DNA from: Lepidodermella squamata
Lineage: Eukaryota; Animalia; Gastrotricha
Reading direction: 5' to 3'
Assembly (NCBI GenBank): GCA_047495785.1
Contig: JBLDXI010000042.1
Location: 186,001 to 250,000 of the forward strand
DNA length: 64,000 nt
Part shown: one piece after another, positions 16,008 to 57,009 of the stretch
Layout: each line of letters starts with the position of its first letter
How positions within the stretch are numbered: the first letter of the stretch is position 1
The notes under the pieces: generated by a model
What the model was told of the DNA's origin: nothing
Database searches by the model: none
The model's input: only the letters and a program-made list of their open reading frames with translations
Position numbers and translations under genes: made by a program

Positions 16008-19000
16008 TCAACCTGTGGACCACGCTCGACTCGCTCCTCGCATCGTCAGCAAATCGGCCGCTGCGGTTCTGTTTTGATAAATTGCTCGGTCAAGAGGCGT
16101 TTCACCATAGATATTCCTGACATCCTTATTTGCACCTCTATCCAGCAACAGTCGCGCTACATCGGCCCACCCGGACGAAACCGCAAAGATCAATGCTGTG
16201 TTGCCGTCTTTATCCTTGGCGTCGATAGCTGCCTTGCGATCCAGTAACAGTCGAACCACTGCGACATGCCCTTTCGAAGCGCGGTCCGGCTATTGTTACC
16301 TTTAGCATCGGCGGAGGCGTTGCGATCCAGCAACAGCCGAGCTACCTCGAATGTCCCATACGAAGCAGCATATGACAAAGCCGTGTCGCCATTGGAATCG
16401 CTAGCCTCAATGGCGGCCTTGCGATCCAGGAAAAGACGAACCACCGCGACTTGACCGCTACTTGCTGCACGCATCATAGCCGTCGAACCGTAGTTATTCT
16501 TCGCCTCAATTGCAGCTTTACGGTCCAGCAATAGTCGAACTGCTTCGATTTGTCCAGCCATAGCCGCATGCATCAATGACGTCATACCTTCGTTATCCTT
16601 AGCCTCGATGGCAGCATTGCGGTCTAGCAACAGGCGAAGTACTTCGATATGCCGGGTCCCAGCAGAAAACATCAGCGCCGTAATACCAAACCCTTCCCTC
16701 GCATCGATAGCAGCGTTGCGATCTAGCAGCGGTCGAACTACTTCGATTTTCCCATTTATAGCAACATTCATCAACGCCGTTATGCCTGCGTTGTTCTTCA
16801 CCTCGATGTTAGCCTTGCGATCCAGTAATAAGCTGAGCACTTCGAGTCGCTCCATAATAGCCGCCCACATCAAAGCCGTTTGGCCATCGTCACTTCTAGC
16901 CTCGATCGAAGCGTTGCGATCAAGCAACAGTCGTACAGCTTCGACTTTTCCTGCCATAGCGGCCCTTATCAATGCCGTTTTACCTTCGTTATCCTTCGCC
17001 TCGATGTTAGCTTTGCGATCTAATAACAGTCGCAGTACTCCGATTTGCCCTTTAAAAGCCGCATAAATTAGCGCCGTCCAGTTATCCGTTCCCTTAGCCT
17101 CGATAGCAGCGTTGCGATCTAGTAACAGTCGAACCACTTCGACATTCCCACCTATAGAAGCAATCACCAACGCCGTCCAGCCATCGTTATTCTTAGCATC
17201 GATGGAAGCGTTCCGCTCCAGTAATAAGCGGAGAACATCGATTCGCCTCATATTAGCCGCAATAATCAACGCTGTGTTGCCGGCGTTATTTTTCGCCTCG
17301 ATTGCAGCGTTGCGATCCAGCAATAGTCGAACTGCTTCGATTCGCCCAGCCGAAGCCGCATACATCAACGCCGTCTTACCGTCGTTATCCTTGACCTCGA
17401 TGGCAGCACCGCGGGCTACCAGCAGTCGTAAGGTTTCAACTGGCGCGCTGATAGCCGCATACATCAACGCCGTCTTACCTCCATTATCCTTGGCTTCAAT
17501 GGCAGCATTGCGGTCTAGCAACAGTCGAACAACTTCGACATTCCCGATCCCAGCAGCAGACATCAACGCCGTCATGCCATTTTTTACCCTCGCCTCGATA
17601 GCGGCATTGCGATCTAGCAACAGGCGAATCACATCGGTCTTCTCTATCGCAGCCGCAATCACCAACGCTGTCCAGCCATCGTTATTCTCAGCCTCGATAG
17701 CAGCGTTGCGATCCAGTAATAAGCGGACGACTTCGGTTTGCCTATTACTAACAGCATACAGCAACGCCGTAAAACCATTCGCACCTTTAGCCTCGATCGA
17801 AGCGTTGTGATCAAGCAACATTCGTACGGCTTCGACTGATCCATATATAGCCGCCACCATCAACGCCGTCTTGCCATCGTTATCCTTGGCCTCGATGTCA
17901 GCGTTGCGATCCAGCATTAAGCGGAGTACTTCGATTTGCCCTTTAAAAGCAGCATACATCAACGCCGTCAAGCCGACGTTATTTTTAGCATTGATGGAAG
18001 CGTTTCGATCAAGCAACATTCGAGCCACTTCGTCATCCCCAAACATAGCCGCTTCCATCAAGGCAGTCCTTCCAAAGGCAGCGTCCTTCAGATTCACATC
18101 GGCACTGCGATTCACCAACAGCCGAGCAATCTCAAGTCGCAGGGCTGGTTTTCGGCTGGAACACAGCCAAACACCCAATAGCAGCGTGCTATTTCGTATA
18201 GCCGACCTATCGCAGGAGGACGCGTTTGGGTTGCGCCAGTTTGGGTCGAACTTGCCGCCAGTTGCATCGTCGATGTCGGCGACAAGTTGCCGCACTTGCT
18301 CAGCGTCGTCCGTCTCGGCTGTTACATTCCACAATTGGTCGTACACTTCGCGGATCTAAATGCCGACATGAAATAGAGATTACCAATTGCATTTAGAACA
18401 GAAAGGCATAGAGGTATAGAGAACTGATTGAACTAGAAAAACTGGTTTCACAAATGTGCGACAGGTACGAATTCAAGCGCGTAACAAATATTTTGGAGAA
18501 CCGCCCTCCCTTCTTACTACCGAATACTAACTGGTCTCTGCTGCTCTGACACGCAAGAACCAGGCTGGGACCACGTGAAGTTCGAGAGGCACAATATGGA
18601 AGCATTTCCTCGAATCGCAAAGTTTTGCTTGCAAGATATATTTCGCGTAGCTCCGATGCTCGACGGACCAGGGGATACGTTGCCGTTTCGGATCGTGCGA
18701 ACAGCACCGCAGCCTTGACGTCACACATTACATGGGACGAGAGTGAAGCAATATATTTACTAACCTGTTGGATTGCATCTTCCACTTAGCACTGGGCGAA
18801 ATGGAGGCACGCAAGAGGCAGTCGACACAGAGGCGGAGTAGGCATAGCCAGGGTTGCACTTAACACTCACCACGCCTCCTCTTTCCACCACTGTTCCAGT
18901 CCTCAGAACTGCGCCAGTATCTTCCGATGTTTCTGGGTCCACTCGGGTCACAAATCCCGCTGTCACATTCGGTACGGTACAAGACTGCGACGGAGTAGTT

Positions 19001-20209
19001 GTCTGGCTTCCAACATCTGTATTTTCCGAAATCCAATCAAGAACCTTGCAGACTCTGCTGTAGATAACTGGACTGTCTCCGCTGCATGACTCGTCGCCAA
19101 TCGAAATTAGGCCAAGCAGGTAAGTTCTCCTCGACATCGAACACATTAGCGGGCCCCCAGAATCAGCGAAGCAAACGTCGCTACCATCGGCGGCTAAACA
19201 CATTTTCGAATCGGTGATGTTGAGTGGATAAGAACGGCCTCGGGAATAATCCGTCGAGCAATTTCGGTAGGACTGAACTTGAAGATTGAGCTTCCTCGGG
19301 ACCTCAGATATTCTGACTGAAATACATACATGCCTCGTAAAATCGGATGCTCTGTTATCATTTAAGTCACTTTATCACTCTTTCGAGCGAAATTTCCCCA
19401 ATCCCACCCAAGTAAAGTGATGCATGATAATTTTAAATAATTTTACACCTGCATTCAAATCCACCTCGGACCTCGGAATTAGCTGGTTTATAAATCGGGC
19501 AAATAATTGAATGAAGCGTGACCTACTTTGTGACAAATGACGCCAGCCAACTGCGACTGCCGAATCGCATCCGTCGATCGAATTCGTTGTCAATGAGTTG
19601 GCTCGGCAGATAGTACTCGCATCAGGTAGGCAAATCGGCCTGATCTCCTGCGAGAATCTAGTGACTGGGCTCATCAACCGCAGGAGAGCGAAGTCAAAAT
19701 CGTAGAAATTCGGACTTCCACTGTATTGCGGATGGACTAAAGGTGGCAGAACCACGAGGGATTCGCGAGAGGCTGTCTCTGAACGAACGCTGATGTTATG
19801 ACGCCCCAACAACGCCTTGATCCTGTTCACAAAACCAATTTCAGCCATCTGTTCAGAGAAAATAACAGAATTACCTACATAATTGGGGTGCTTCCGGCAT
19901 TCAAAATGCAATCAGCAGCTGTTATCAGCCATTGCTTCGATATTAGAGTAGCGCCGCAATATGAGGCTGACGTTTCGCGGTTGTGATAAATTTCTAGCAT
20001 AACCTTGAACGAGCATCCGTTTTCGGCTATTAGAAACTTATTTGAATGACACAAACCAGCCATGGGTAGTCGTTCGGTCCCGTCGGGTGACTGCCAGGGC
20101 CGCTTGATTTAGGCATCGCAGTAGGGATTACAGTGCCACATCCGAGATCTTGAGCAATTACAACTCCGTAAATCAGCCAATGGTAAACAAAAGCTATAAG
20201 AAGAAGCAT
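16008..20209 (-). CDS. Gene A: secreted pseudo-protease-Sushi-Sushi-ankyrin protein (6 exons: about 20209-20057, 20003-19879, 19822-~19527, ~19316-~18764, 18713-18532, 18355-16008); frameshift near 16280 disrupts the last repeats and C-cap
   Basis: Signal peptide MLLLIAFVYHWLIYGVVIAQ; trypsin motifs YPWL, CGATLISKQWLITAADC, DFALLRL, PICLP, CFADSGGPLMC; CCP1 CTVPNV..KCNPGY..C; CCP2 CGAVRTIRNG..SC..F.IRG..ILC...WSQPGSC; about 21 ankyrin repeats; phase-compatible GT-AG introns. Confidence 0.8.
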
Positions 20210-21250: not shown

Positions 21251-23788
21251 TCAAGCGCAGGGTGGGGATTTCAGGCGACTTGCTCCTCGCGACTCCAACA
21301 GATCGATCGCAGCTGTTTTCTTAAAATATATAGCCATTCCTAGGGCTGTACAGCCATCGCTAGTCTTGGAATCGATGGCGGCTTTGCGATCTAGCAACAG
21401 CCCAATTACTTCAACTTGCTCAGTCAAAACCGCTTGCATCAATGCCGTGTAGCCACCGTTATCCTTGGCCTCTATCGCAGCGCTGCGATCTAGCAACACT
21501 CGAACTGCTTCGGCTTGCCCAAACAAAGCCGCGTGCAACAAGGCCGTCATACCTTCGTTATCCTTGGCCTCGATGGCAGCATTGCGATCCAGCAAAAGGC
21601 GTATTTCTTCGATTCGCCCACGCTTAGCCGCATGCATCAGCGCCGTTAGGCCGCCATAATCCTTTGCCTCAATAGCACCCCTGCGATCTAGCAGCAGGCG
21701 AACCACTTCGACTTTCCTTTCCATGACAGCATGCATCAACGCCGTGTAGCCAGATTTATCCTTTGCCTCGATTGCAGCGTTGCGATCCAGTAACAGCCGT
21801 TCAACTTCGACTTGGCCATTCATAGCCGCATGTATTAGCGGCGTGTAGCCTTCGATATCAATGACTTCGATGGATGCGTTTCGGTCTAGCAGCAGTCGCA
21901 CTGTTTCTACTTGCCCATTCTTAGCTGCATAAATTAGCGCTGTGCAGCTATCATCGTCCTTGCTCTCGATGGCAGCGTTTCGATCAAGCAGCAGTCGAAC
22001 CACTTCGTCATCCCCAAACATAGCCGCTTCCATCAAGGCAGTCCTTCCATAAGCAGCCTCCCTGAGATTCACATCGGCACCACGATTCACCAACAGCCGA
22101 GCAATCTCCAGTCGCACGGCTGGCTGTCGATTAGCGCATAGCCAAACGCTGTGCAGAAGTGTGCTATTTTGTGCTGTCCAACTATTGCAGTTAGATACGT
22201 TTGGGTTACGCCAGTTTGGGTCGAACTTGCCGCCAGTTGCAGCGTCGATGTCCGCAACAAGTTGCCGCACTTGCGCAGCGTCGCCCGTCTCGGCTGTTAC
22301 ATTCCACAATTGCTCGTACACTTCACGGATCTAAGCGAAGATAAGTATCAAAAATAAAAAATTGAGATCCCTGATTTCTCAGCTGTGAGCAAGTAAAAAA
22401 TAATCAGTTTGAGGAGTGAATGCTCTCACCGCATTTTTTGCTAATCCGCCGTTTCTTTTTAAGGAGTTAACTCAGAAATTGAGGGAAGAGGATTTAATAA
22501 TCATCAATTTTTCATCCAAACCACTTTAACAATTTTATGCTTTTTCAAAATAAATATGCTTGTCACCGTGATTGGAAAGGCTCCTAATTGCAATGCTTAG
22601 CGACCAGAAAGGCCCAGAAATATTCCCAGAATTGTTAGTAAAACTGACATTATCACCACTTCCTGGCGGCCCCTGGGCACGTGTCCTCTGTGCCTATGCG
22701 TTGAAACCGCCCTTCTACTAAATACTTACCGGTCTTTGCTGCCCTGACACGCAAGAACCAGGCTGGGACCACGTGAAGTTCGAGAGGCACAAAATGGAAG
22801 CATTCCCTCGAATCGCAAAGTTTTGGCTGCATGATATATTTCGCGTAGCTCCAATGATCGACGGACCAGGGGATACGTTGCCGTTTTGGATCGTGCGAAC
22901 GGCACCGCAGCCTTGACGTCACGCATTACAGGAGATGAGAGTGAAGCAATGTATTTACTAACCTGTTGGATTGCATCTTCCACTTAGCACTGGGCGAAAT
23001 GGAGGCACGCAAGAGGCAGTCGACACAGAGGCGGAGTAGGCATAGCCAGGGTTGCACTTAACACTCACCACGCCTCCTCTTTCCACCACTGTTCCAGGCC
23101 TTAGAACTGCGCCGTTATATTGCGAAGTATCTGAGTCCACTCTTGTCACAAATCCCGCTGTCACATTCGGTATAATACAAGACTGCTCGGGAGTAGTTGT
23201 CTGGCTTCCAACATCAGTGTTCTCCGAAATCCAATCAAGAACCTTGCAGACTCTGCTGTAGATGCCCGGAGTGTAACCGTTGCATGACTCATCACCATTC
23301 GAAATTATACCAAGCAGGTAAGTCTGCCTTGATTTCGATCACATGAGAGGACCCCCATAATCTCCAAGCAAACGTCGCTGTTACCGGCAGCGAAACACAT
23401 CTTCGAATCGGTGATGTTTACTGGATCAGAACGGCCGCTGGAATATTCGAGCGAGCAATTTCGGTAAGATCGAACTTGAAGATCCAGCTTCCTCGGGATC
23501 TCAGAAAGTCTGGCTATATCGAGATAGCGATTACGCTATTTGAGTCGTGGCAAGTGATTCGAGCATTCTCTATTTCGAACACTGGCCCCTCTGTAAATTT
23601 AAACTAGCTATTGCCTACTTTGCCCGACTCTGCTATGAAAGAAAATTACATACTGTATGCAAAATGTCCCCAGCCAACCGCGACCGCCGAATCGCATCCG
23701 TCGATCGAATTCGCTGTGAACGAGTTGGCTCGGCACATGGTACTAGCGTCGGGTAAACAAATCGGCCTGATCTGCTGCGAGAATGTAG
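21251..23788 (-). pseudogene. Gene B 3' part: decayed protease exon + CCP1 + CCP2 (22911-22730) + intact ankyrin exon (22330-21251, about 8 repeats)
   Basis: Paralogous to gene A; the protease exon has a 1-bp frameshift, GDYGGP (Ser->Tyr) and ATG-TGA at about 23340; 5' exons deleted at 23785-23788. Confidence 0.8.
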
Positions 23789-24021
23789 GATCCTCGAGCC
23801 AGGGAACGGAGGAGATCATTATTCATTATTTCAGATATCTGAATTCATGCTTTCGGTAGATGGAATGGCATCGAACATCGCTCGCTTTTTAGTTGAAATA
23901 GCATTTTTTTTTATTTTGGCAAAAACAGCAAAAAACAAGTATTCCATCCTTAGCAGGCCTCCGGGATCCAAGATCGCACCCTGAGTGTATTATTAGCCAA
24001 TCAGAATAAAGCAATTCGAAG

Positions 24022-25020
24022 TTACTCAAATTTCAAATAACGAAGCAAGGCAGGCGGTAAAACGCCGTCCAATCCATTATCTATAGCACCGAGGCGTTCC
24101 TTATAACCTGTAGGCAGGCGGTTGAGAATCGCCATTCTGCACATCGCCTGTAGCTTCATCGGAAAATGCTGCGCTACATGAGGCATCACAAGTCGCCGGA
24201 ATCTAGTGCTTCCGGCAGCATCGCCTGTTCGCTCCCTTAATTTCTCCGGGTTAAAAGATGACGTCATTCTTGCGAAGAGAAGAATTTCAAACAAGCGATC
24301 GTCCAGTTGTCTCGGATTGTTGTTCCTTTCATAGGCCCATGTTTTCAATATGAGGCGAGTGAACACCGCATCTTTAGCGCAGCATTCGCACATCATACCA
24401 GCCTTTATCAGGGTTTTCAAAAACTCACCCGTCGATCCGCCTCTGAATAAAAAAGCGGGAACTCTCGAGCGGAGAATCGTGCCAACTATACATGACGGCC
24501 AAGATGAACAATTTTCCTGAAGGGTAGTCTCTAGATGCGCCCCGGATTCGACGAGGAACTTCGCAATGTCCCATAGGGAATAGGAGGAGGCAGTATTCAA
24601 TGGAGATGATTCTCCGCTTGGGAAATTCAAATTCGCCCCACGGGCTACCAGAAGCTCAACTGTTTTTAAACGATCTTCGACACGGTCGTCATTCCGGTGT
24701 TGTTTTGTAGTATGCATTGAAAATTGGTTGAGTTTAATCCTTCCAACCATCCAAGGATTGCAAGCTACTGTTAAGCACGTATAATGGAATGCAACAAATG
24801 TATTATCCGGTCGATAATGGAAACCCGTAGTTTTCAAGTTGACTTTTCGCGTTGATAACAGGTAACTGAGGCATTTGTGGCTTGCTGCAGCGCTGACTAC
24901 TAGAGCGATTTTATCGGCACCCTGTGCTGAAACAGCGTTGTCGAGGTCAGACGAGAAGTAGGCAAGGTCGTCGTCTTCGCAGGCCTGGGCAAATTTCGCA
25001 TGGTTGAAGTTGCTGCTCAT
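24022..25020 (-). CDS. Ankyrin repeat and SOCS-box protein, copy 2 (one ankyrin repeat deleted in frame)
   Basis: Starts MSSNFNHAKF like its paralogs; RLKTV|ELLVARG junction; SOCS box intact. Confidence 0.8.
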   Translation of the reverse strand: MSSNFNHAKFAQACEDDDLAYFSSDLDNAVSAQGADKIALVVSAAASHKCLSYLLSTRKVNLKTTGFHYRPDNTFVAFHYTCLTVACNPWMVGRIKLNQFSMHTTKQHRNDDRVEDRLKTVELLVARGANLNFPSGESSPLNTASSYSLWDIAKFLVESGAHLETTLQENCSSWPSCIVGTILRSRVPAFLFRGGSTGEFLKTLIKAGMMCECCAKDAVFTRLILKTWAYERNNNPRQLDDRLFEILLFARMTSSFNPEKLRERTGDAAGSTRFRRLVMPHVAQHFPMKLQAMCRMAILNRLPTGYKERLGAIDNGLDGVLPPALLRYLKFE

Positions 25021-25254
25021 TTCAAAAATGCGTAATAGCCTAATGATATCAAGATATAAACAGATACTACCAGCTGAGCACGGAATGTTAGGAATAATCA
25101 ATTAGGATGAATCGATATTTCATCCTATTCTCCCTGAGCTGTTATTTCATTAATTAATAAATATGTTATATATTATCATAATATTATTATTAGTATTATA
25201 TTTTTATTATTATTATTAATTATAATATATAATTATTTTATTAATTGATAAACG

Positions 25255-25669
25255 GAGTGTCTGCTCGTACATAGTATGTACGCGAAAATCGCTGCTCGTA
25301 CATATATTTCTCATTGTTTATGTCAAATCAGTCAACTTTTTTATTTTTCGATCGATTGGTCTAGTTTTTTGCAGGCAGATAGCTGACAGTCATATCTACC
25401 TTCCCTGAAAGTGTCAATCTTGTATTCCCGATAAAATAGTCGGAAAAAAAGCAAAAGCAAAACCACTTTTCGGGCCCTCCCATCGGGCAGATGATAGTTG
25501 AGAAAAAGATATTTGACCCACGAATAGGACTCATTACCCCGCATCTACCTGTAAATTTTCATGAAGTTATCAGAAAAAATGACTAGTCTATGCCTTCCAG
25601 AAAAACACCGAAAAACTATGTACGAGCAGCGATTTTCGCGTACATATATATGTACGAGCAGAAGGACTC
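25255..25669. mobile_element. MITE with GAG...CTC termini (possibly Sola-like)
   Basis: tctgctcgtacata..tatgtacgcgaaaatcgctgctcgtacata and its reverse complement at 25618-25669. Confidence 0.65.
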
Positions 25670-25850
25670 ATTAATAAATTAATTGATATTTCATGCCATC
25701 ATTCATCTTCCAAAATTGTAAGCAAATTTCTGGTCAAACCTTCAATTTCGGAATGTCGATGTCTGCCTGTTTTTCTTTCTCACTATTCCTAAATAATAAA
25801 GCTTCATATTGAATTGGTCTTTATTATTTGCATTGTTATTGGCATTGAAG

Positions 25851-26698
25851 CAGTTCCTCGGGATCTCAGATAGTCTAGCTATATCGACAGAGCGATAACG
25901 CTATTTGAGTCGTGGCAAGTGATTCGAGTCCCCTCTTTTTCATCTCTATTTCGAACACTAGTTTCTCTTTGGATTTAAAGTAGCTATTGCCTAATTTGCC
26001 TGGCCCTGCTATGACAGAGAATTACATCCTGTATGCAAAATGTCCCCAGCCAACCGCAACCGCCGAATCGCATCCGTCGATCGAATTCGCTGTGAACGAG
26101 TTGGCTCGGCACATGGCACTAGCGTCGGGTAAACAAATCGGCCTTATCTGCTGCGAGAATGTAGCAACTGGGGTCATCAATCGCAGGAGAGCGAAATCAA
26201 AGTCGTAGAAATTCTGACTTCCGCTGTATTGCGGATGAACCAAAGGCGGCAGGGACACAAGTGATTCGCGAGAGGCTGTCTCAGACTGAACACTGATGTT
26301 ATGCCGCCCTAGCAGCGCTTTCATCCTGCACAGAAAACTTATTAACACCATCTGATAGAGGAATCGCCGAACCACCTACAATATTGGGGTATCGCCTGCA
26401 TTCCAAACGCAATGAGCAGCTGTAATCAGCCATTGCTTCGAGATGAGAGAAGCTCCGCAGTAAGAGGCTGAGGCTTCGCGGCTGTTATAAATCTCAAGAA
26501 AGACCTTAGAAAAACGTGTTTTTCGGTGGCATGAAACATATTAATATCAAGTCAAACCAGCCACGGGTATTCATTTGCTTCAGCTGGGTGACTGCCCGGG
26601 CCTCTTGATTTCGCCGCTGTGGAAGAAATTACAGTACCGCATTCTTGAGCAATGACAACTCCGGAAATCAGCCCAAGGAAAGCGACAGCTTCAAGCAT
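25851..26698 (-). pseudogene. Gene B 5' part: signal peptide and protease exons 1-3, truncated at the start of exon 4
   Basis: MLEAVAFLGLISGVVIAQECGTV...EYPWL; CGASLISKQWLITAAHC; DFALLRL...PICLP; near-identical to 23486-23788 where the two overlap. Confidence 0.8.
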
Positions 26699-27224: not shown

Positions 27225-28337
27225 TTAATCAAATTTCAAATATCGAAGCAAGGCAGGCGGTAAAACACCGTTTAATCCGTTATCTATAGCATCGAGACGT
27301 TCCTTACAACCAGTTGGCAGGCGGTTCAGAATCACCATTCTGCACATCGCCTGTAGGTTCATCGGAAAAAGCTGCGATACATGGGGCATCACAATATCCC
27401 GCAATCTAGGGCTTTCAACGCCATCGCTGGTTCGCGGATTGCAATTCTCCGGGTTGAATGACGATGTCATTCTTGCGAAGAGAAGAATTTCAAAAAAGCG
27501 GTCGTCCAGTTGGCTCGGATTCTTGATCCTTTCATAGGCCCATCTTGTCAATATGAGGCTAGTGAAAATCTCATCTTTAGCGCAGCACGCGCACATCATA
27601 CCAGCCTTTACCAGGGTTTCGAAAAACTCAGCCATGATACCGCTTGGGAAAGCAATGAACCGCATCCCGCCTAGATCAAACGATTCTGTGTTGCGGAGAA
27701 ACAAGTATACTATACATAACCACTGTTTGTCCTCGGGGGGATGAGTAGTCTCTAGATGCGCACCGGATTCGATGAGAAAATTTGCAATCTCGTAACAATC
27801 CATGAGGTAGGCAGATTTCAGTGGAGTTGATCTGCCGCTTGGGAGATTCACATTGGCCCCACGAGCTACCAGAAGTTCAACCAACGGCCTCAGCTTTGAG
27901 AACACACACAATTTCAAAGCTGTGCATTGACTTGTTTGATCGATGTAATCAATTTCGGCACCGTGGTCTAGTAATACGCTAACTGTTTTTAAACGGTCTT
28001 CGATACGTCGGCTATCTCGATGTTGTTGTGTTGTACGCAGTGAAACAGTGTCGACTTCAAGCCCTCGGGCATCATATAGATCGCAAGCTGCTGTTAAGCA
28101 CGTGTGATGCGATGTGAGAAGTTGAACATTTGGATAGAATCCTTTAGTTTCCAAGTTGACTGTTCGCGATGATAACAGGTAACTAAGACATTTGTGGCTT
28201 GATGTAGCGCTGACTACCCGAGCGATTTTATCGGCGCCTAGCACTGAAACAGCATTATCGAGGTCAGACGTGAAGAAGGCAAGGTCGTCGTCTTCGCAGG
28301 CCTGGGCAAATTTCGCAACGTTGAAATTGCTGCTCAT
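27225..28337 (-). CDS. Ankyrin repeat and SOCS-box protein, copy 3, intronless
   Basis: Same N-terminus, ANK motifs and SOCS box as 11548-12639. Confidence 0.85.
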   Translation of the reverse strand: MSSNFNVAKFAQACEDDDLAFFTSDLDNAVSVLGADKIARVVSATSSHKCLSYLLSSRTVNLETKGFYPNVQLLTSHHTCLTAACDLYDARGLEVDTVSLRTTQQHRDSRRIEDRLKTVSVLLDHGAEIDYIDQTSQCTALKLCVFSKLRPLVELLVARGANVNLPSGRSTPLKSAYLMDCYEIANFLIESGAHLETTHPPEDKQWLCIVYLFLRNTESFDLGGMRFIAFPSGIMAEFFETLVKAGMMCACCAKDEIFTSLILTRWAYERIKNPSQLDDRFFEILLFARMTSSFNPENCNPRTSDGVESPRLRDIVMPHVSQLFPMNLQAMCRMVILNRLPTGCKERLDAIDNGLNGVLPPALLRYLKFD

Positions 28338-29687: not shown

Positions 29688-30896
29688 CTACGAGCTTTTC
29701 GCTTTTTCGATCATTTCCTCTGAGATTTTCCACAGCCGCTCAGCCTTCACGTCATCACGCGCAATCGCGGCTAAACAGCCTTGAACCACCTGAGAATCAC
29801 TGAAGAAACAACCGCTGTACATTTCGTCGATCTCCGGCTCACACGCGCAGTAGATCGTTGTTTTGGCGCCGTTTTGAGGTGTCATGGCAAAGCATCGCTG
29901 AACTGGCTCGAAGAATGCCAGGAAAGTACTCGATTGATTACGTTGAGCAATCGTGGTACGGACGAAGCCCGGATGCAGCGAGAACACTGCAATGCCGCTG
30001 GGTTGGCTTGAATTACCAGGGGTCGATCCGTTCAGCTCGAAATGCAGCCTTCGAGCATGCAGGATATTCGCCAGTTTCGACTGGCTATCTACATAAACAT
30101 TTTTCATAAATAAAATATTTTGCAAGTAACAATAAAATAAAAATAAATTTAAAATTGATTAACTGAATGATTTATTATGAAATTTATATAAATTTATTTT
30201 TCGAAAATAAAGTGAATTTCATTGAAAAATTCTAGAAAATTGAAAAAATTCGAAATTTTTCAGATTTAAATACTTACAAGCTCTCATCCCGCCATACTTT
30301 CCCGGCTGTTCCGAGTTCAAATCGTCGATATCGAGCCCACCAGGCCAGGTAAACATGTGAGCTTGCGATGCCACATTCACGATCCGACCCGGTTTGGACT
30401 TCTTGATAAGAGGTAGCAGCAAATTTGTCAGTAAAAAATGGCCCAAATGATTCGTTCCAAAGGTCAGTTCAAATCCATCTTTTGTAAAATACCGCTGATC
30501 GTTGCCAGCATGAACGCCAGCGTTGTTAATCAAAACGTTGAGAATCGGTTCGGTTTCGAGAATTTTCTTCGCGCACTGGCGGACAGAATTCAGGGAAGAC
30601 AAATCCAACTCAATTGTTGTAACTACACAGGTCGATGCGTATTGGCTAGATTCTTTGGCCAGTGCTTCCTTGATGTTTTTCGCCGCTTCCTGAGCTGATT
30701 GAGTGTTTCGACAGGCCAAAATCACCTTACTAGCTCCTCGCCTTGCTAGCTCGAGAGCTGTTTCATACCCTATACCTGTATTTGATCCTGAAAAATAAAG
30801 AAAAATTGTCGGTGAAAATTGGGAAATTTCGAAAAATTTACCAGTAATCAGGCAGACCTTTCCTTTGATGTCCCACTTTGTAGCAGTGGCAGCCAT
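29688..30896 (-). CDS. Short-chain dehydrogenase/reductase, RDH11-14/WWOX-like (3 exons)
   Basis: ITG|SNTGIG, NNAG, TNHLGHFLLT; YSQSK catalytic motif formed across an intron; LHPGFV. Confidence 0.9.
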
Positions 30897-31687
30897 TTTT
30901 AAAACTGCTCTAAAAATCGGGAAAAGTGATACTGTCCGGCAAGACAAATAGCATAATGATAAGGAGGGCATTTTTTTCTCTAGTAGGCTGTGGGCTGCAT
31001 CATTTCAGATAAAAACTACGTCAGTACTACAGTACTATAGCATGAGCCTATAGCGTGTAGCTTATATAGGAAAATCTACTATAGTACTATAGTCCTATTG
31101 ACCGCATGCACACTCTCGCATACAACATGCATAGTATCTATTGTAAAACTCATTTAAATAAGCCGGGAAAAAGCTCTGCGCGGTTTTTAACAACTCTGAT
31201 TCTCAGAAATTCAGTTGCATGAGGATTTCTTTCAGATTAAGCCAAAAAGTTGTTTTACGTTAGGCTGTTTATTCTCTTTTTGAGAAAGTCACATTTAATA
31301 TTCTACCTATGAAAATGGAAAAATTCCGACAGAAAACAAGAGTCATTTTGCAAAAAGGCCAATATATGTTGTGACTACAATAGACTAAATGGGCTTCTGA
31401 ATTTCATGCAAGAAGTCAATAGAACCAAATCGTTCAGATGATTGTTAATCTAAAAGAATCTGAAAATTGTAATCAATAAAGTTGTTTTTCAGACGCATCG
31501 ATCTCATGGCGCGTGGCGAAACAATTCATTGACAACAACTTGTTTTTATTGGAAGAATCCACATTTCATTTGAAAAATTGAAAAATTGTTTAATAGAATT
31601 GTTTAAGAAATTTTCTGTGACATTGGCTATCTTTTCTAAATGTAATGCATCGCAAACATTGTTGGTCATGTTTTCTAGGTCATCATT

Positions 31688-43993: not shown

Positions 43994-44619
43994 AACTGGA
44001 ATCTCAAATGAATTTTAGAAGCTTACAATTTTCCCATCGACCTTATTATATAAAATCCAACTATTGATACTTGGTTCGAACCTGGTTTATAGCATTTTTC
44101 TTGTACTATTTCATGATTTTTCCAGCTTGGATTGAAACCAAAGCTTCGATGATATGATACATGAGATATTCAAGAGATGAAAATGAGAGTGCAATTTTTT
44201 TCAGCTAATCTCGCTATCACCGTACCATCGGAAAGTACATCTTTGACAGCAGTTATCAGTCAATTATATTTGTCTCTCCCTCTCTCTCTACACTCTACAT
44301 CAAAGGAGAGTTGTTTTCCTACTCTTCGCAATAGCTTTGGAAAATATTCGCCACCGCCAAGGCAATGAAACGACTGATCATCCTTGCTATTTCCTATTTC
44401 ATAACCGGATGTCTTCAATCTTTGAGTGGGAATTTTCAACAAAGGTTCTTAATAAGGTAATACCCATGCATTGCATTAATATTATATTAGGAGAAAAGAC
44501 ACGAGCTAAAACCTAATATACAAAGAATACTTGAAAGAAAAATACAAAATGTAGCACGTAAACACACGGGCGAGAGGAAACTCTTGTTTGAAAGCTCAGT
44601 TTATTGTTCAATTTTCAAA

Positions 44620-47315
44620 ATGCGTCTCTACATAGCATTTGTAATCGCTTTCGTTGGGCTGGCATCAGGACTGGTTGTTGCTCGAGATGATATTGATACT
44701 GTGGGTAAGTAACAGTTTAAAACATTGCAGCTAGCTTTGAACCAATTTTGTAATGTGGGCTGTTAAGACTGCGGTACTGTTCCCACAATCCGAAACGGCA
44801 ACGTATCTCCTGGTCTATCGAGTTTCGGAGCCACTCGAACCATATCATGCGACGAAAACTTCGAAATTCAAGGAAATGCTGCCATATCGTGCCTATCGTA
44901 CTCAACCTGGTCCCAGCCTGGTTCTTGCGTCTTCAGAGAGTCACCATATGTAAGTTGCTGCCACATATTCACATTGATGTCTGCTTCTAAGGTCTAAGGT
45001 TTTCATTTGGTTTTCGGGCAAGGATAAAATTCCCCTTTAATCCTTTCACGGCGGGAAGGACGATTTCGGAATTTCGACTTTGAACATTTCCAGGAAATCG
45101 AATTTGGTTAAATTTGAGGAATATTTCTTTCCGATGCTGGCTACAAAGTTTTGAGACAAGGACACCGTTATCTTGCATGGTCAGGGCATGCTAGCAATAT
45201 GAAAGTAGTAAACCTGATATTGAAATTTCGATTTTTTTCAACTTGAAATTTAATAGGTTTCTGATCATTTTCCACCATGGTCTCATTGACCTCTGTTTAA
45301 ATTTTTTCGAGTTGGAAATTAAGAATGACGAAGCTATTAAAATTCAATCAAACCGGCCGAATTCGTCCTATCCGCTCAGTCTTATTCAGGCGGATTCACG
45401 TGTGATTTTCGTGCAGCAAAACTGTCGCGTGGAAAAACTGGAAATGCTGACTTAATCTGAAATCTGAAATCTGAATGCTGAGCCTCTGGAACTTTTTAAA
45501 CTGAATGTTTTTGGTGATATAGCGATATAATTAAGGGAAAATCTCAGGGACTAATTTAGAATCTAAAATTCTAAAGCTAAAGGCACCTGACACCTGACAT
45601 TGAAATTAAGGGTGCTCCACAAATCGCCTCAAATCAGCTGGGCGGATAGGACTAGTTATCGATCAGTTTTTGTACCGCCATACCAGATATTGTATAATAT
45701 TTCTATGTTTTTCATTCAGATTCGCGCAGCATACAGGAGGCTGTGGAATGCAACAGCCGAGGCGGAAGACGTGGACCTGGTGAGACAACTGATTGCGGAG
45801 ATCGACAATGCCACTGGCGGCAACTTCAACCCGAACTGGCGCAACCCAGAGCTGTTTCCCTGCAAATCTCTATTATGGGATATGAAGAATACTCCCCTGC
45901 TTCACAGTGTCATGTGTGCTAATAGTACGCAATCAGACCAGCAAGTGCAAATAGCGCAACTGTTGATCGGGGATCAAGGTGCTGATGTGAATTCCAAGGA
46001 GGGTTCATACGGTTGGACGGCGTTGATAATTGCGGCTAGCGATGGGCGCGTCGACCTAGTTAGATTATTGCTGGATCGCAACGCTTCAATCGAAGCTGGG
46101 GATGACAATGACGAGACGGCGTTGATGAATGCGGCTGAGTATGGGCACACCGAAGTTGTTCGACTGCTGTTGGATCGCAATGCTTCAATCGAAGCTGCGG
46201 ATATGTGCGGATATGGCCGGACGGCTTTGATGTTCTCGGTTCTAAATGAGCACACCGAAGTAGTTCGACTGCTGCTGGATCGCAACGCTACAATCGACAC
46301 TGATGATAACTATGGCAAGACGGCTTTGATGCATGCGGCCATTTGGGGGCGTGTCGAGGCAATTCGGCTGCTGTTGGATCGCAATGCTAACATCGAGGCG
46401 AAAGATGACTATAACATGACGGCGTTGATGCTTGCGGCTGAGTATGGGCACACCGAAGTAGTTCGACTGCTGCTTGATCGTAATGCTTCAATCGAAGCTG
46501 AGGATGACGCTGGCCAGACGGCTTTGATGAGTGCGGCCATTTGGGGGCGTGCGGCCATTTTGGGGCGTATCGAGGCAATTCGGCTGCTGTTGGATCGCAA
46601 TGCTAACATCGAGGCGAAAGATGACTATAACATGACGGCGTTGATGCGTGCGGCTGATTTTGCGCGTGTCGAGGCAGTTAGACTGCTGCTTGATCGCCAT
46701 GCTGACATTGAGCTCAAGAGTAGCACTGTCATGATTCGTGCGACTGGTTTTACGAGTAACATGATGTCTCGAACGATGCTTGATTTCTTCGATTTGATGA
46801 TAAGGAAACGGGAAGACAATTGCTCGACCGCGTTGATTGATGCGGTAAGAAGAGAGCAGGTCGAAGTAGTTCGACTGCTGCTGGATCGCAATGCCGACAT
46901 TGAGGCCAAGAGTAGCAGTGGCATGACGGCGTTGATGTGGGCGGCTGGTTATGGGAGTGGAATTAATGTTCCAGCGATGGCGGATCGCAACAATTCTATA
47001 GGGACACAGGAAAGCAATTGCTCGACCGCGTTGATTGATGCGGCAAGAAGAAAGCAGGTCGAAGTAGTTCGACTGCTGCTAGATCGCAATGCCGACATCA
47101 ATGCTAAGGATGAGGATGGCTGGACGGCGTTGCTGTGGGCGACTGAGGAAGAACAACTAGATGTAGTTGGACTGTTGCTGGATAGAGGTGCAAAAACGGA
47201 TGTCAGAAGTTCAAGTGGCGTGACCGCGCTCGATTTAGCGATTTGCAAAAACAAAGCCGCCGTGGCCAATCTGCTGAGGTCGCGAGGAGCAAGTCGAGCG
47301 ACGTCGTCCTGCTGA
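44620..47315 (+). CDS. Gene C: secreted Sushi/CCP-ankyrin protein (exons 44620-44704, 44768-44949, 45720-47315; about 620 aa, about 13 ANK)
   Basis: MRLYIAFVIAFVGLASGLVVA signal; D-CGTVPTIRNGNVSPG..SCDENFEIQGNAAISC...WSQPGSC; phase-1 then phase-0 GT-AG introns give one open frame into IRAAYRRLWNAT. Confidence 0.88.
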
Positions 47316-48824
47316 AAAAACCCACAGAGTTGGACGACGTTCAGCGGGAACTGAGATAGATTATCTGATTATCTGTATACTTGCAGTGAAAGTTGTCTAA
47401 ACCGGGCTCGGATCGCAAAATGGCCCATTTCAGACGAAGTCCGCACTATTTATACTATATGCATTAAATTCAATTGCCACACTTGTTACCTGAGCAGCCA
47501 TTAGCGATTTCTGAATATAACATTCACGATAGAAAACTGGTTAGCAATATTAACTCAAGCAATCGGGGGATTTTATATTATCCGAAAAAAATAAATATGT
47601 GGTAGAAAATAAATGTTCGTGAGCTGTAAATAACCTTAAACCTAACAGCAGCACAGTGAACAAATGAATCGCAGCAAGGAATCAATGAATCATGAATGAA
47701 TCATGAATGACTCGTAAGACTCGTAGACTGAAATCACGAGGAGTTATCAACCTTTTTTAGCCTCTTGTTTGGCCAATGCTATATACAGTGTGTCCGCGAA
47801 ATAACACGCAAAACTACTTTTAGACTTGTAAGGCTAGTCGCAGAAATTGCTCAAGGCGCGTGACTCTTTAGGCTAGTTTTCAAATGAAGCGAGTCTCACA
47901 CGTGCCACTATGAAAAAAAAAGATATGTTTTTTATGAATGCACACACAAGAAAATAAGAATTTAGATGATCAAATTATTTTTTCCAAACTATTATCGAGG
48001 GTGTTTAACAGAACTACTCTCAAAATGGAATATAAAAATAAATTCAAAGTTTCATTCCTTGATGCGTCCTGTAGTCAAATAATGTCCTGACGACATTCGA
48101 ATTAATTTTCATATCAAAAATAAGGAGAAACAACGGTAATGAGAAGCAGCCCGAGCGCCGAGATGAATGGAATTAAATTGAAATTAGAATTAAGCTTTTT
48201 TGTGAAAAGCTTACGGTGAGCCATGGTCACCTTCAACAAAAAGCAAAAAGCAACTACATATGCTACGGGGAATCCTTACCTCTCATCGAGCTGGTATGTT
48301 CTCCGTTTTCGTCTTCGGTGATCTCCTACGAGACTATAACGATTGATTTCAGATGACATCAAATTCTGTTAAATTAAATAAACTTTCACTTTCTAAAACA
48401 GTTCTGGTGACATTTAAGTATGTAAACGTACTAAGTATTCGATGCTGAACATTTTAAAATTAAAATTATCATTAAAATCGTACACAAAAAAATAATCTGC
48501 CAATAGAAGCTTAATTTACTGCCGAAAAAAGTCTTTGCTGCCAAAAAAGCATGGTCCTATTCAAAAGACCAACCCTTCGATTAACATTATGATGAATAAG
48601 CTTTAAAATGAGAAGAATCTAGCTAGACTGCTCAAATCTAAAGTTGAAGGAAAATTAATGATTTTTTATCTATATCGATGTTACTATTCACTTTGCTTGT
48701 TGTGATTTTGCGGCCTTCACTATCGCTTTGTTGGCTTTTTTGGTTTATACTGGTTCTGGACCGATCCATGTCGCTGTCACACTTTTCACTGAAATCAAAA
48801 CTGTGGCTAGTCTACCAAAAATAT

Positions 48825-51857: not shown

Positions 51858-52420
51858 TTTTTTTTATTTATGTATAATATTCAGCCCCCTTTCGGGTGGT
51901 GTCAAAAGGTAAGGCCTAGAACATTTATAGAATGTTTGAACGATTCAGGGTCTGTTGCCCACGGGAAGACGGATTTAGGTAGCTGGTTCCACTTTTGTAT
52001 TATCGCTGCCATGCGCAAGAACGGGTCGATGTCGCGGACCGAGCTCGGCGTGTTGAGTCTGATTTAATAGCTGTGTTCGCGTTCAGCGTTCCGCAGTCTG
52101 CCTGGTCTTCGTGCCACTCTAACAAACCTCGCCCTGATTTGCTGAGTACCACGTCGAGCTACAATTATTTTATATAGGTAGCACATCACGCCGACGAATC
52201 GGCGTTTAGCAAGAGGCTGAAGTGTCACCCCTGTTGCTCTGACAAATCGGTCTTGAACTTGGTCGAGCATTTTTCCGAGCAATATCCGTACTCCCGTATC
52301 CCCGCTACTTCTCACACTGGTCTCGCGTGTCATTCCAAGATATTTCTGCAAATTTCATAGAAAGCATCGTTCCACCTAATCGGAACCAGAGTTTGATAGT
52401 TCGACTCCAGCACTCATCAC
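51858..52420 (-). mobile_element. 5'-truncated CR1/L2-like LINE 3' end
   Basis: LDQVQDRFVR..LQPLAKRR..YLYKII, then (frameshifted) IQKWNQLPKSVF..SFKHSI; A-rich tail at about 51858-51870. Confidence 0.65.
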
Positions 52421-52912
52421 TTATTTTTTTTTTAATTTCTCAGTTGCTTCGATCTTCTGGAAGTTTTTCATAGTTACGAAATGCGGAAATGCCGATATGA
52501 CGAGACTGCCACACTTGCATAGACTTGAAAGTTTAGTGTTCCGACTTCACGCTTAGATCACGTGGGCACCTTTGACCTCCAAAACAGTAGTATAATGCTA
52601 CCCTACATCAAAGGAGCGGTTGTTTTCCTCCTCTTCGCAATAATCGCCACCGTCAAGACACTGAAACGACTGATCCTCCTTGCTATTTCATAACCGGATG
52701 TCCTCAATCTATGAGTGGGAATTTTCAACAAAGGATCTGAATAAGATATTACCCACGCATTGCATTCATATTACAATAGGAGAAAATACATGAGTTGAAA
52801 CCTAATATATGAAAAGTACTTGAACGAAAAAAACAACACGTAGCACGTAAATGCGCACACAGGCAAGAGGAAACTCTTGTTTGAAAGCTCAGTTTCTTGT
52901 TAAATTTTCAAA

Positions 52913-55900
52913 ATGCGTCTCTACTTAGCATTTGCATTCGCTTTCGTTGGGCTGGCATCTGGACTGGTTGCTGCCCAAGATGATACTATTGATAATGTGG
53001 GTAAGTAACAGTTTTAAACATTGCAGCTAGCTTTTAACCACTTTATGAATGCGGGCTGTTAAGACTGCGGTACTGTTCCCACAATCCGAAACGGCAACGT
53101 ATCTCCTGGTCTATCGAGCTTCGGAGCCACTCGAACCATATCATGCAACGAAAACTTCGAAATTCAAGGAAATGCTGCCATATTGTGCATATCGTACGCA
53201 ACCTGGTCGCAGCCTGGTTCTTGCGTTTTCAAGGAGTCACCAACTGTAAATTGCTGCCACATATTCATAATCCCATCGATATCTGCTTCTAATTGGGTGT
53301 TTTAGTTTGGTTTTCGGGCAAAGATAAAATTGCTCCTTAAGTTGTACGGTGAATGAGGGGTGCCGTACCACCAGTTCGGCAGGCCGAAGTGGAGAAGCCC
53401 CAAAACAACCACAGTGGTACCCTTTGGTCTGATTGCATAAGACGTACTATTGGACGCCGCGGCTTGCGGAAAATCAGAAAAAGCGTAATAGTTTTAATGA
53501 GGTCCAAAGTCCAGCTCAACCAATAAATCATCGCATTACATTTTTTGCAATCAATTATTAAAAAATTTTAAATATCGATATTCGTGGACATAAAATTAAG
53601 CCGCGTAGCAACCGAGCGGTCATGTAATGGGAGCTTCGAAGCTGCGGCGTCCTATAGTACGTCTCATGGCTGATTGCTGCCAGCTGGTTGTATAGTGCAA
53701 TGAGACGTAGCTAGGACGCCGCAGCTGGGTTGTTTACGAGAAAAAAGTGTTGTCAGAGATAATTAGGGTCAAAGGTCACTTTTTGAAAATAATGAGATAA
53801 ATCACCTCATTAAATTTTCGCGCTCTTTTAATCCTTATTTTATGTTGTCCAAAATAAGGTTAAAAGTGCCCTTGATTCGGGCGCGATCAATCGATAATTA
53901 ATTGCATTGGAACACATTGTAAAAAATGATATCAACACCTGCTTCGAGCCATTAATTTTCAAAATTATCTATTAATAATGCATGAAACTAAAATCAATAG
54001 ATGTAATGAAGAAGCTTGAATTTGAATTTACTTGAATTTACTTGAATGTGAAATGTGAATCTAACTTGAACTAGAGAATAATTGAAAAAATTGATCAAAA
54101 ATTACAAATAAAAAAAAATAAAAATCGATAGGATAACTGAGAAAAACTGAGAGCTGAAAAAATCTAAAAATTGAGATGCTGATCACATCCAGCCCATTTT
54201 TTCATTCCAGTTTGAACTGCCAGTAATTTATCAGACCGCAAATAGGCAATCAAGTTCCCGGTGAAAGTCCTCTAGCCGAAAACTTCGAAAATTTCGACTG
54301 AAAAACATTTCCTGCTCGATTGTTTAAGAGATGAAATTATCTTACGTCATTACGCAACGCAACAGCTGCAGCATAATCGCGACGTGAAAAAGAAAAACAA
54401 CTCAATGGAAAATATCTGCATACGGCTTGTTTGAGTTGCTTTTTGTCTTAAGAAAGTAGTTCGCAGAGCTCTACATCACATGGTTTGAGTTCTCTCGATC
54501 TTGGTTCCTACTTGGAACCTGATTCTAGCTTCGTAACCATCGACGCCTACGATTTTTAAACCTTTTGAATTTTCAACTTAATATTTTTTGAATTTCAGGG
54601 ATTAATAAAATAATTATTTTTATTAAACCCTGAAAATTTAACTTTTACAAAAGGCAAATTATTCAGAATATTCAAGCATGCATAACGCCAACACGTCACT
54701 TTGTATGGCGGGATTCAAGCTTCGGCGTCCTAGCTACGTCTCATGGTGGTAGTGCGTACTGCGTCGCGTGACATCCCAGTGTAATATCAGATGTGTAATG
54801 TCCATAGACATAATATCAGTATAGACTGACTACTCACGAGAAAAGGGGTGTAACGCCATGGGCGCCAGATGGTCTGCTGATTCATCAATTTCTTGGAGGC
54901 CAAAAATCGAAAAATTCAAATCTTCCTCCATCGAATCCTTGGCGATGAAAGTTCGCATCAGAAAGAACCAAATGTCATCTGATAGATCTCTTCAAGAGGA
55001 ACACGGCAGTATTTTTTTGAAAATTTTAATAATGAAAGAAATGGTCAAAAATTGGGAAAGAATTTTTCGCATTCGGAAATAAACCGTGAAAACTGATTCC
55101 AAGAAAGCTAAATTGAAGGACTTTTTCAGGAGAGTAGATTCTTCATTCCAAGACCTACCTTTTGATACTTGGAGCGAACTTGAATGATTTTTTCCTGATT
55201 ATCTGCGATTTTCGAAAACCTCCAACAATGATGTTTGTATTGATTTTTAAGAATGACCCTGCTTTGAACGTCTTCCAACTGCGCCATTTGTGTGCGTCAC
55301 ACGTGCTTTGCTCAAAGGTTCAGGATTGAATCATCCAACCAGTCGGTGGTTTTACTTTGTTTTTTCCCGACGGAATTATTGAAAATTCCTAGAAAATCAG
55401 GAAAAAATCATCCAAGTTCGCTCCAAGTATCAAAAGGTAGCTCTTGGAATGAAGAATCTACTCTCCTGAAAAAGTCCTTCAATTTAACTTTCTTCGAAGC
55501 AGTTGCTATGATTTTTTTCTGAATATGAAAACTGCTATCCTAATTTTTTAGCAGTTCCTTTATCATTAAAATTATAGAAAAAATATCACCGTGTTCCTCT
55601 TGATAAGACCTATTCGATGACACTTGGTTCTTTCTGATGCGACCTTTCATCGCCAAGAATTCGATGGAGGAAGATTTGAATTTTTCGATTTTTGGCCTCC
55701 AAGAAATTGATGAATCAGCAGACCATCTGGCGCCCATGGCGTTACACCCCTTTTCTCGTGAGTAGTCAGTCTATACTGATATTATGTCTATGGTAATGTC
55801 ATTTTCTATGTTTTTCATTTTCAGATTAGCGCAGCATACGAGAGGCTGTGGAATGCAACAGCCGAGGCGGAAGACGTGGCGCTGGTAAGACAACTGATTG

Positions 55901-57009
55901 CGGAGATCAACAATGCCACTGGCGGCAACTTCAACCCGAACTGGCGCAACCCAGAGATGTTCATCTGCAATTCTTGGGAAGAATATTCTTTATTACTGGA
56001 GATGACAAATGCTCCCCTGCTTCACAGTGTCATGTGTACTAATGGGACGCAATCAAACCAGCGAGTGCAAATAGCGCAACTGTTGATCGAGGATCAAGGA
56101 GCTGATGTGAATTCCAAGGAGGCTTTACACGGTTGGACGGCGTTGATGATTGCGGCTGGTAATGTCGACCTAGTTAGACTGTTGCTTGATCACAACGCTT
56201 CTATTGAGGCAAAGGATAACCGTGGCTCGACGGCATTGATGAGTGCAGCTGAGATTGGGCACACGGAAGTAGTTCGACTGTTGTTGGATCGCAATGCTAC
56301 CATCGAGGCGAAAGATAACAATAAAATGACGGCGTTTATGTATGCGGCTAGCAGAGGGCAGGTCGAAGTAGGTCGACTGCTGCTGGATCGCAATGCTGAC
56401 ATTGAGGCCAAGGATGACATCGGTGAGACGGCGTTGATGTTTGCTGCAATGTTTGGGCGTGTCGAAACGATTCGACTATTGCTGGATCGCAACGCTTCAA
56501 TCGAAGCTGAGAATAACAATGGGCAGACGGCTTTGATGCGAGTGGCTAGTTGGGCGCGTGTCGAGGCAGTTCGACTGCTGCTTGATCGCAATGCCGACAT
56601 CAATGCCAAGGATAAGAAAGGCTGGACGGCGTTGATGTATGCGGCTGATTTTACGCGTTCGAACATTATGGTTCGAGTGATGATTGATCGCGTTGAGACA
56701 CGGGAAAACAATGGCTCGACCTCGTTGATAGATGTGGCTAGAAGTGAGCAGGTCGAAGTAGTTCGACTGCTGCTGGATCGCAATGCTGACATCAATGCTA
56801 AGGATAAGAATGGCTGGACGGCGTTGCTGTGGGCGACTGAGGAAGGGCGACTAGACGTAGTTAGGCTGTTGCTGGATAGAGGTGCAAAAACGGATGTCAG
56901 AAATTCAAGTGGCGTGACAGCGCTCGATTTGGCAAGTTGCAGAAACGAAGCCGCCGTGGCCGATCTGCTGAAGTCGCGGGGAGCAAGTCGAGCTAGGTCA
57001 TCCTGCTGA
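52913..57009 (+). CDS. Gene D: secreted Sushi/CCP-ankyrin protein (exons 52913-53000, 53064-53245, 55825-57009; about 484 aa, about 9 ANK)
   Basis: MRLYLAFAFAFVGLASGLVAAQ signal; 182-nt CCP exon; phase-0 acceptor into ISAAYERLWNAT; upstream region duplicated with gene C (about 52590-52912 vs 44290-44619). Confidence 0.88.
53435..53669. mobile_element. MITE with CCATGAGACGTA-type TIR and 6-bp TSD (ctgatt), in gene D intron 2
   Basis: ctgatt|gcataagacgtactattggacgccgc ... gcggcgtcctatagtacgtctcatgg|ctgatt. Confidence 0.65.
53698..54746. mobile_element. Second, larger element of the same TIR family, in gene D intron 2
   Basis: caatgagacgtagctaggacgccg ... cggcgtcctagctacgtctcatgg. Confidence 0.65.
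54802..55793. mobile_element. About 1 kb foldback MITE, CCATAG...CTATGG termini, 6-bp TSD (taatgt), in gene D intron 2
   Basis: Near-perfect inverted arms of several hundred bp (the mirrored ORFs 54858+ and 55737- start identically); taatgt on both flanks. Confidence 0.85.

Follow-up and report, generated by a model that had tools for sequence, protein, structure and literature searches.

A large family of predicted secretory-pathway Sushi-ankyrin proteins, in part linked to trypsin-like domains, in the gastrotrich Lepidodermella squamata

We analysed a stretch of 64,000 nucleotides from the gastrotrich Lepidodermella squamata (assembly GCA_047495785.1, contig JBLDXI010000042.1, positions 186,001 to 250,000; the whole stretch is called the window here and positions are counted from its first letter), in which an initial annotation, made from the sequence alone, had proposed four paralogous genes for secreted proteins that join a Sushi (CCP) module to an array of ankyrin repeats. 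The window DNA is eukaryotic, its introns being short and of the GT..AG type, and the four paralogs, A to D, were confirmed, each with its large ankyrin open reading frame (ORF) where it had been placed (Pfam ankyrin families PF00023/PF12796, E 1e-53 to 1e-162, strict 33-residue periodicity). A 182-nt Sushi exon spliced in phase 0 onto a single large ankyrin exon was found in 4/4 genes, and an upstream signal peptide could be read heuristically in all four as well; in A and B it is not an exon of its own and sits in the trypsin-like first exon. Two genes, C and D, are intact and of the short form (signal peptide-Sushi-ankyrin); the other two, A and B, are of the long form (signal peptide-trypsin-like domain-CCP-Sushi-ankyrin), with a Thr-rich linker after the protease domain (Table 1).

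Table 1. Exons and parts of the four Sushi-ankyrin genes, in window positions
Gene	Feature	Coordinates	Strand	Description
C	exon 1	44620..44704	+	start codon and predicted signal peptide (MRLYIAFVIAFVGLASGLVVA, followed by RDD after the predicted cut), phase 1 at end; hydrophobic peak 2.48
C	exon 2	44768..44949	+	single Sushi/CCP, 182 nt, four Cys and one Trp, phase 0 at end; Pfam Sushi 38.1 bits (cutoff 20.7)
C	exon 3	45720..47315	+	N-terminal cap (N-cap, ~93 aa, 2 conserved Cys), ~13 ankyrin repeats (some degenerate), C-terminal cap (C-cap) ending ...SSC, stop
D	exon 1	52913..53000	+	predicted signal peptide
D	exon 2	53064..53245	+	Sushi/CCP, 182 nt; Pfam Sushi 34.2 bits; GT..AG introns
D	exon 3	55825..57009	+	N-cap, ~8 ankyrin repeats, C-cap, stop; preceded by a 2579-nt intron with an inverted duplicate
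A	exons 1-4	20209-20057, 20003-19879, 19822-19527, 19316-18765	-	predicted signal peptide, trypsin-like domain, Thr-rich linker, first CCP
A	exon 5	18713-18532	-	Sushi/CCP, 182 nt; Pfam Sushi 35.5 bits
A	exon 6	18355-16008	-	N-cap and ~20 ankyrin repeats; 13-bp deletion at ~16278 shifts the frame
B	whole gene	26698..21251	-	predicted signal peptide and protease exons start at 26698 (TAAHC retained); protease part broken
B	first CCP	23134-22961	-	still open
B	Sushi exon	22911-22730	-	182 nt, still open; recovered by the family Sushi hidden Markov model
B	ankyrin exon	22330-21251	-	8 repeats, still open

After splicing, gene C gives an uninterrupted ORF of 620 residues with two GT..AG introns (63 nt and 770 nt) and gene D one of 484 residues (63 nt and 2579 nt). 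The donors of both genes read GTAAGT or GTAAAT and the acceptors GTTAAG, ATTCAG or TTTCAG, and the ankyrin exons lack a plausible start codon of their own. In the 2579-nt intron of gene D two near-identical stretches stand opposed, at about 54825-55080 on the plus strand and 55770-55540 on the minus strand, with the same frame of 76-85 residues on both strands, and together they look like a foldback or an insertion of the MITE (miniature inverted-repeat transposable element) type.

Two public sequencing runs containing gene C, X1 (stored as contigs and RNA-like) and X2, were placed on positions 44550-47400. X1 had depth over all three exons of gene C and zero or nearly zero depth in the introns (in intron 2 between 45030 and 45701), and it carried both of the junctions predicted for this gene by the initial annotation, 44704/44768 and 44949/45720, which were absent from X2. 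One X1 joint lies at 44703/44767 with 63 nt skipped and becomes GT..AG once the cut is moved by one (44704/44768), the other lies at 44949/45720 with 770 nt skipped and is GT..AG as it stands, and a further joint at 44947/45720, with two letters replaced, represents this second junction in an allele or a closely related paralog. X2 has the character of DNA, with the gene C introns covered and the exon joints absent. The X1 evidence that the signal, Sushi and ankyrin exons of gene C are spliced together is good but not final. The depth of X2 rises to about 17,000 at 45030-45125 in intron 2 of gene C, against about 100-400 nearby, which marks this segment as a repeat of very high copy number.

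The six exons of gene A are separated by introns of 51-210 nt, all of them GT..AG. Exons 3 and 4 match the Pfam Trypsin family (PF00089) at 27.3 and 56 bits (cutoff 20.6), and in the protease domain His57 is replaced by Asp (TAADC) while Asp189 and DSGGP are retained, so that A would be a pseudo-protease even when intact. Relative to the intact counterpart A', which lies on another contig of the assembly, 13 bp are missing at about 16278; therefore the gene A ORF stops at 16190 after 30 out-of-frame residues, at the cost of the last 2.5 repeats and the C-cap. Gene A had been described as spanning 20209-16008, and its exons do lie there, but position 16008 is reached only through the frameshift. 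Gene B is damaged twice. At about 23789 some 2.4 kb have been inserted, containing an ankyrin+SOCS-box ORF (25101-24025), which is a diverged copy of a neighbouring gene, and a second copy of a portion of protease exon 3; moreover, a 1-bp deletion lies near 23366, just ahead of the catalytic Ser. Neither long form in the window has the full catalytic triad His57/Asp102/Ser195, A having TAADC and B having TAAHC but a frameshift ahead of the Ser.

The counterpart region (contig C36, 515-595 kb; positions 515001-595000, loci L001-L008) is collinear with window positions 11500-63200 at 87-96% nucleotide identity. Its copy A' has an intact ORF of 1224 residues, its copy B' is intact with TAAHC and GDSGGP retained, and it holds three copies of the C/D type versus two in the window, one of which stops after 240 aa and one of which has just 4 repeats. 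The synonymous divergence between A and A' is 0.059, and the region may have arisen by segmental duplication or be a very divergent haplotype that was not purged from the assembly.

The Sushi exons of A, C and D pass the Pfam Sushi family (PF00084) with 34.2-38.1 bits against a cutoff of 20.7, and that of B matches the family's own Sushi profile and shows the pattern of four Cys and one Trp. A signal peptide was recognised heuristically as Met, an optional basic residue and about 15-18 hydrophobic residues ending in V-x-A or I-A-Q, with Kyte-Doolittle peaks of 2.0-2.5. As had been claimed, no transmembrane helix is visible: the N-terminal segment alone is clearly hydrophobic (above 1.6 over 19 residues on the Kyte-Doolittle scale), elsewhere the maxima are 1.26-1.62, and the marginal value of 1.62 falls within one ankyrin repeat of gene A and does not represent a membrane span. 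The proteins end in polar C-termini (..RGASRATSSC), with no hydrophobic tail of the glycosylphosphatidylinositol-anchor type. The YRR of gene C, which lies between Sushi and ankyrin, was examined as a possible furin-type cleavage site and rejected for lack of conservation. A single-sequence fold of the gene D ankyrin exon was poor (predicted local confidence, pLDDT, 62) and was used for the helix pattern alone, in which helix pairs are visible.

In 21/24 aligned members the N-cap has exactly two Cys, and these occupy the same two alignment columns (48 and 66 in the numbering of the gene C N-cap); it also carries N-x-S/T sequons at N10 in 20/24, N57 in 17/24 and N68 in 13/24. Over the whole proteins, sequons occur at about twice the expectation from composition, and about 30% of the repeats read D-R-N-A-S/T. 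A model of the N-cap folded from the 24-sequence alignment (pLDDT 89.9, predicted template-modelling score 0.83) had ankyrin domains and DARPins (designed ankyrin repeat proteins) as its best matches in the PDB, with template-modelling scores of 0.60-0.66 and root-mean-square deviations of 2-3 Å, at weak Foldseek E values (0.02 or higher); in the ESM Atlas the N-cap likewise looks ankyrin-like, without an informative cluster. On these matches to ankyrin and DARPin structures the N-cap is a specialised ankyrin cap and not a separate domain; it is specific to the family and comprises two degenerate ankyrin repeats, with one conserved cysteine pair and conserved sequons. This cysteine pair and the sequons fit life in the secretory pathway.

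When characterizing 156 distinct ungapped repeats, we found entropy above 2.6 bits at repeat positions 3, 4, 6, 11, 14, 15 and 17, which correspond to DARPin positions 2, 3, 5, 10, 13, 14 and 16, and a nearly fixed scaffold (T7, L9, A12-13, L23-25, D26, R27, A29, A33). The proposal of a fixed scaffold with a variable face thus holds, the entropy peaks lying on the binding-face positions of DARPins; a variable face on a fixed scaffold is also the general behaviour of ankyrin repeats. The number of repeats is about 21 in A', 13 in C and 8 in both B and D, and it falls to 4 in D's counterpart on C36. Pairwise Nei-Gojobori estimates of omega were 0.24 for A/A' (face 0.19, scaffold 0.21), 0.52 for C/D (face 1.05, scaffold 0.33; few synonymous changes, and the repeats are perhaps not orthologous) and 0.72 for D and its counterpart D' (face 1.9, scaffold 0.33; about 18 non-synonymous versus about 2 synonymous differences on the face), and C/C1' gave a face omega of 1.06. 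The scaffold omega of 0.2-0.7 overall indicates purifying selection. These values give a mixed picture of selection: constraint on the face in the A lineage, and about neutral or perhaps faster evolution of the face in the C/D lineage, where misaligned repeats could inflate the estimates.

The family extends far beyond the window. The gene C N-cap has at least 142 matches in the 121-Mb, 151-contig assembly, almost all stop-free and in open frames of 200-950 codons, and they are clustered on contigs C4, C64, C42, C36, C73, C3, C34 and C43. We sampled 20 further loci, which hold 22 N-cap exons; 1-5 Sushi exons lie directly upstream on the same strand in 16/22 of these exons, and trypsin-like exons lie upstream too in 12/20 loci, which makes the protease-linked layout the common one. 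The initial picture of four Sushi-ankyrin genes stands, and it has to be revised for the damage in A and B, for the commoner protease form and for the genome-wide copy number.

All of the 17 long-form first exons examined have Met, a hydrophobic stretch and ..IAQ before D/E (17/17). Many long forms retain TAAHC and GDSGGP; in others the His is replaced by Gln, Asp or Arg and the Ser motif is missing. The zymogen activation site R/K-IVGG was found in 0/17 long-form N-termini, which instead read K-S-[RST]-G-P-G-S-[HQ]-P ... [YF]PWLV or a variant of it (17/17; KSRGPGSHP...YPWLV). This non-canonical protease N-terminus is seen family-wide (loci L010-L013, L016, L019-L021, L024, L026 and L027), in many cases together with His57, Asp189 and Ser195. 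The nearest relatives of C and D, at 70-75% N-cap identity, are L010-L013, which are long forms with dead proteases and have signal-peptide exons resembling those of C and D. Therefore C and D look like derivatives of long forms that lost the protease exons, and with them one CCP.

Searches outside this genome support the claim that the Sushi-ankyrin family is lineage-specific, as no outside relative was found in 5.8 billion proteins, in JGI (Joint Genome Institute) metagenome contigs or in the searchable literature. Among the 5.8 billion proteins, N-cap words of gene C had no match (proteins of 292-929 aa), N-cap words of gene A matched three generic ankyrin proteins through the canonical repeat alone (397-1262 aa), and the whole ankyrin exon of gene D had no Sushi or Trypsin domain among its best 120 matches, with identities of at most about 50%. 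A profile search of 1.84 billion representatives, with a query that included one canonical repeat, gave a list filled by long generic ankyrin proteins; one match that reached further into the N-cap (P0137) was rejected as not related. N-cap patterns had a single match in the JGI metagenome contigs, a spurious one on a high-GC bacterial contig, and a full-text search of the searchable literature did not reveal a family of secreted animal proteins with a Sushi-ankyrin or protease-CCP-ankyrin layout. An Rfam search of the window gave no match.

We consider it rather probable that the four window genes are members of a very large, lineage-specific family of secretory-pathway proteins whose ankyrin arrays bind extracellular targets and some of which are linked to a protease. 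Within this reading the layout of the proteins and their entry into the secretory pathway have good support. The data show the domains, the exon structure, the gene C splicing, the size of the family and its conserved secretory features; secretion itself, target binding, proteolysis and a biological role are what we infer from them. The products would have, in order, a cleavable signal peptide, in most members an S1 protease or pseudo-protease with a Thr-rich linker, 1-5 CCP/Sushi modules, and an ankyrin array of about 4-21 repeats with its caps. Such proteins would enter the secretory pathway and then be released; the concave ankyrin face, the seat of nearly all sequence variation, would bind an extracellular protein target, which might come from microbes, non-self cells, prey or a host or be an endogenous matrix protein, with the CCP modules as a spacer. 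In the long forms with an intact triad the protease domain may cleave the bound target or something adjacent to it, and this tethered protease would not be regulated as a classical zymogen, and the role of members with a dead protease or none would be that of plain binders, decoys or regulators.

Some points weigh against this reading. The shorter side of the X1 joints measures 24-30 letters, just below the 31-letter rule, and X1 is labelled as probable RNA; X1 also contains too few words of gene A to be listed, so that it does not show expression of the long form in the window. Secretion depends on a heuristic reading of the signal peptide, and two of the four window genes (A and B) are damaged. 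Because no long form has the R-IVGG site, catalytic competence is doubtful even where the triad is kept.

These points are shared in part by the idea that the family is an artefact of gene modelling or is decaying, with the ankyrin exons being separate cytosolic genes or pseudogenes that merely lie beside Sushi exons. The damage in A and B, the C36 copy that stops after 240 aa, the degenerate repeats of gene C and the short sides of the RNA joints could all be read in this way. However, both predicted joints of gene C fall at exact GT..AG sites with introns empty in X1, the ankyrin exons by themselves lack a plausible start, 16/22 sampled copies repeat this order, strand and phase, nearly all 142 N-caps are open, the scaffold omega is below 1, and the N-cap Cys and sequons are conserved, and we regard an artefact as very improbable. 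Another explanation is that the genes encode outward-directed effectors (venom, digestive, prey- or host-directed), whose arrays would bind targets of another organism in the manner of latrotoxin and bacterial ankyrin effectors. No toxin domain was detected by Pfam and CCP modules are more typical of host-side recognition or regulatory proteins, so this seems improbable to us, even though a secretory signal together with ankyrin repeats is otherwise known mainly from toxins and effectors, the arrays are fused to trypsin-type proteases with Asp189, and venom and effector families typically undergo very large tandem expansions. It may also be relevant that the two public runs with the sequence bear different organism labels, which might reflect a host-associate pair.

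The family could also be a germline-diversified immune or allorecognition repertoire, with ankyrin receptors comparable to the variable lymphocyte receptors (VLRs) and protease forms serving as a complement-like trigger. Its large copy number, the variation of repeat number between copies (about 21, 8, 13, 8 and 4), the concentration of variation on the binding face, the omega of face versus scaffold (about 1.05 versus 0.33 for C/D and 1.9 versus 0.33 for D/D'), the differences in copy number and gene integrity between the collinear contigs, and the pairing of CCP with an S1 protease, which recalls the complement proteases, are all in line with such a repertoire. We nevertheless judge it unlikely: the face omega is 0.19 for A/A', the C/D values come from few synonymous changes in repeats that are possibly non-orthologous, variability at face positions is general in ankyrin repeats, and the neighbouring genes are ordinary, none of them being immune genes. 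The VLR analogy is a hypothesis that the evidence here neither supports nor excludes.

Carried further, the reading of a secretory-pathway family with extracellular targets would describe an undescribed system of extracellular recognition plus proteolysis. In it at least 142 germline-diversified arrays, adapted to the secretory pathway by cap disulfides and glycans, would each bind a target of their own (a microbe, a non-self cell, prey or a host protein) and in part carry a non-zymogen S1 protease, and A, C and D would be opsonin-like binders or regulators. This extended form is a tentative proposal that we would not yet bet on. If a large, expressed and exporting family is borne out, nature would use the DARPin principle outside the cell, and export would show how cap cysteines and glycosylation sites can fit ankyrin repeats for the secretory pathway. 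The protease-linked forms, if the reading is true, would be a novel means of directing a protease to its target. Further, the family would supply natural extracellular ankyrin binders together with active, dead and protease-less variants with which the coupling of recognition and cleavage could be probed. For annotation, the lesson is that ORF-based views show "cytosolic" ankyrin ORFs alone and miss the small Sushi and signal exons.

Other genes of the window lie around and between the four paralogs. Three single-exon ASB-like ORFs, at 11551-12639, 24025-25101 and 27228-28337 (all on the minus strand), have SOCS-box scores just under the Pfam cutoff, and the one at 24025-25101, located within the disrupted gene B, is a duplicate that has diverged to 81% identity from that at 27228-28337. 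Two Cys-loop channel ORFs, at 14192-15445 (-) and 39733-40539 (+), encode ligand-binding and membrane domains, and three short-chain dehydrogenase/reductase ORFs lie between B and C, at 30222-30971 (-), 31688-32530 (+) and 33634-34929 (+). Single-exon ORFs at 59555-61117 (-), 61665-62867 (-) and 36129-37187 (-) are TMEM26-like, a rhodopsin-type seven-transmembrane receptor and a protein with a RING-variant domain (RINGv), respectively.

Compared with known systems, the family is a novel combination of known modules and not a novel type of molecule; its size and the predicted extracellular use of ankyrin repeats are what is unusual. Ankyrin repeats in animals are almost exclusively intracellular binding modules. 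The arrays resemble DARPins and consensus ankyrin arrays in their near-consensus 33-residue repeats, their capping repeats and the entropy at the randomised positions 2, 3, 5, 13 and 14. Unlike DARPins, the family genes are natural and place the array behind a signal peptide and Sushi, the caps have a conserved Cys pair and sequons, position 33 is a fixed Lys/Arg and not variable, and the arrays reach up to about 21 repeats. The ASB proteins, three of which are encoded in the window, share the ankyrin repeats and the same physical cluster, but they are single-exon, have a SOCS box and no signal peptide, and are ordinary cytosolic ubiquitin-ligase adaptors that do not belong to the family.

Among secreted proteins, MASP, C1r/C1s, factor B, Limulus factor C and haptoglobin likewise join an S1 fold to CCP modules, and haptoglobin is matched further by the protease-dead members of the family (such as A, with His to Asp). 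In contrast to these complement-type proteases, the order in the family is reversed, with the protease N-terminal right after the signal peptide, there are no CUB, EGF, vWA or lectin parts in the family exons scanned, the recognition part is an ankyrin array, and there is no canonical R-IVGG site. Alpha-latrotoxins have long ankyrin arrays that act outside the producing cell. They possess wing and body domains and no Sushi or protease, whereas upstream of the family arrays Pfam finds just Trypsin and Sushi. VLRs are similar in their solenoid repeats, variable concave-face residues, variable repeat number and, as predicted for the family, secreted product; they are LRR-based and arise by somatic assembly of cassettes into one locus, whereas the family consists of many complete germline genes built on an ankyrin scaffold.

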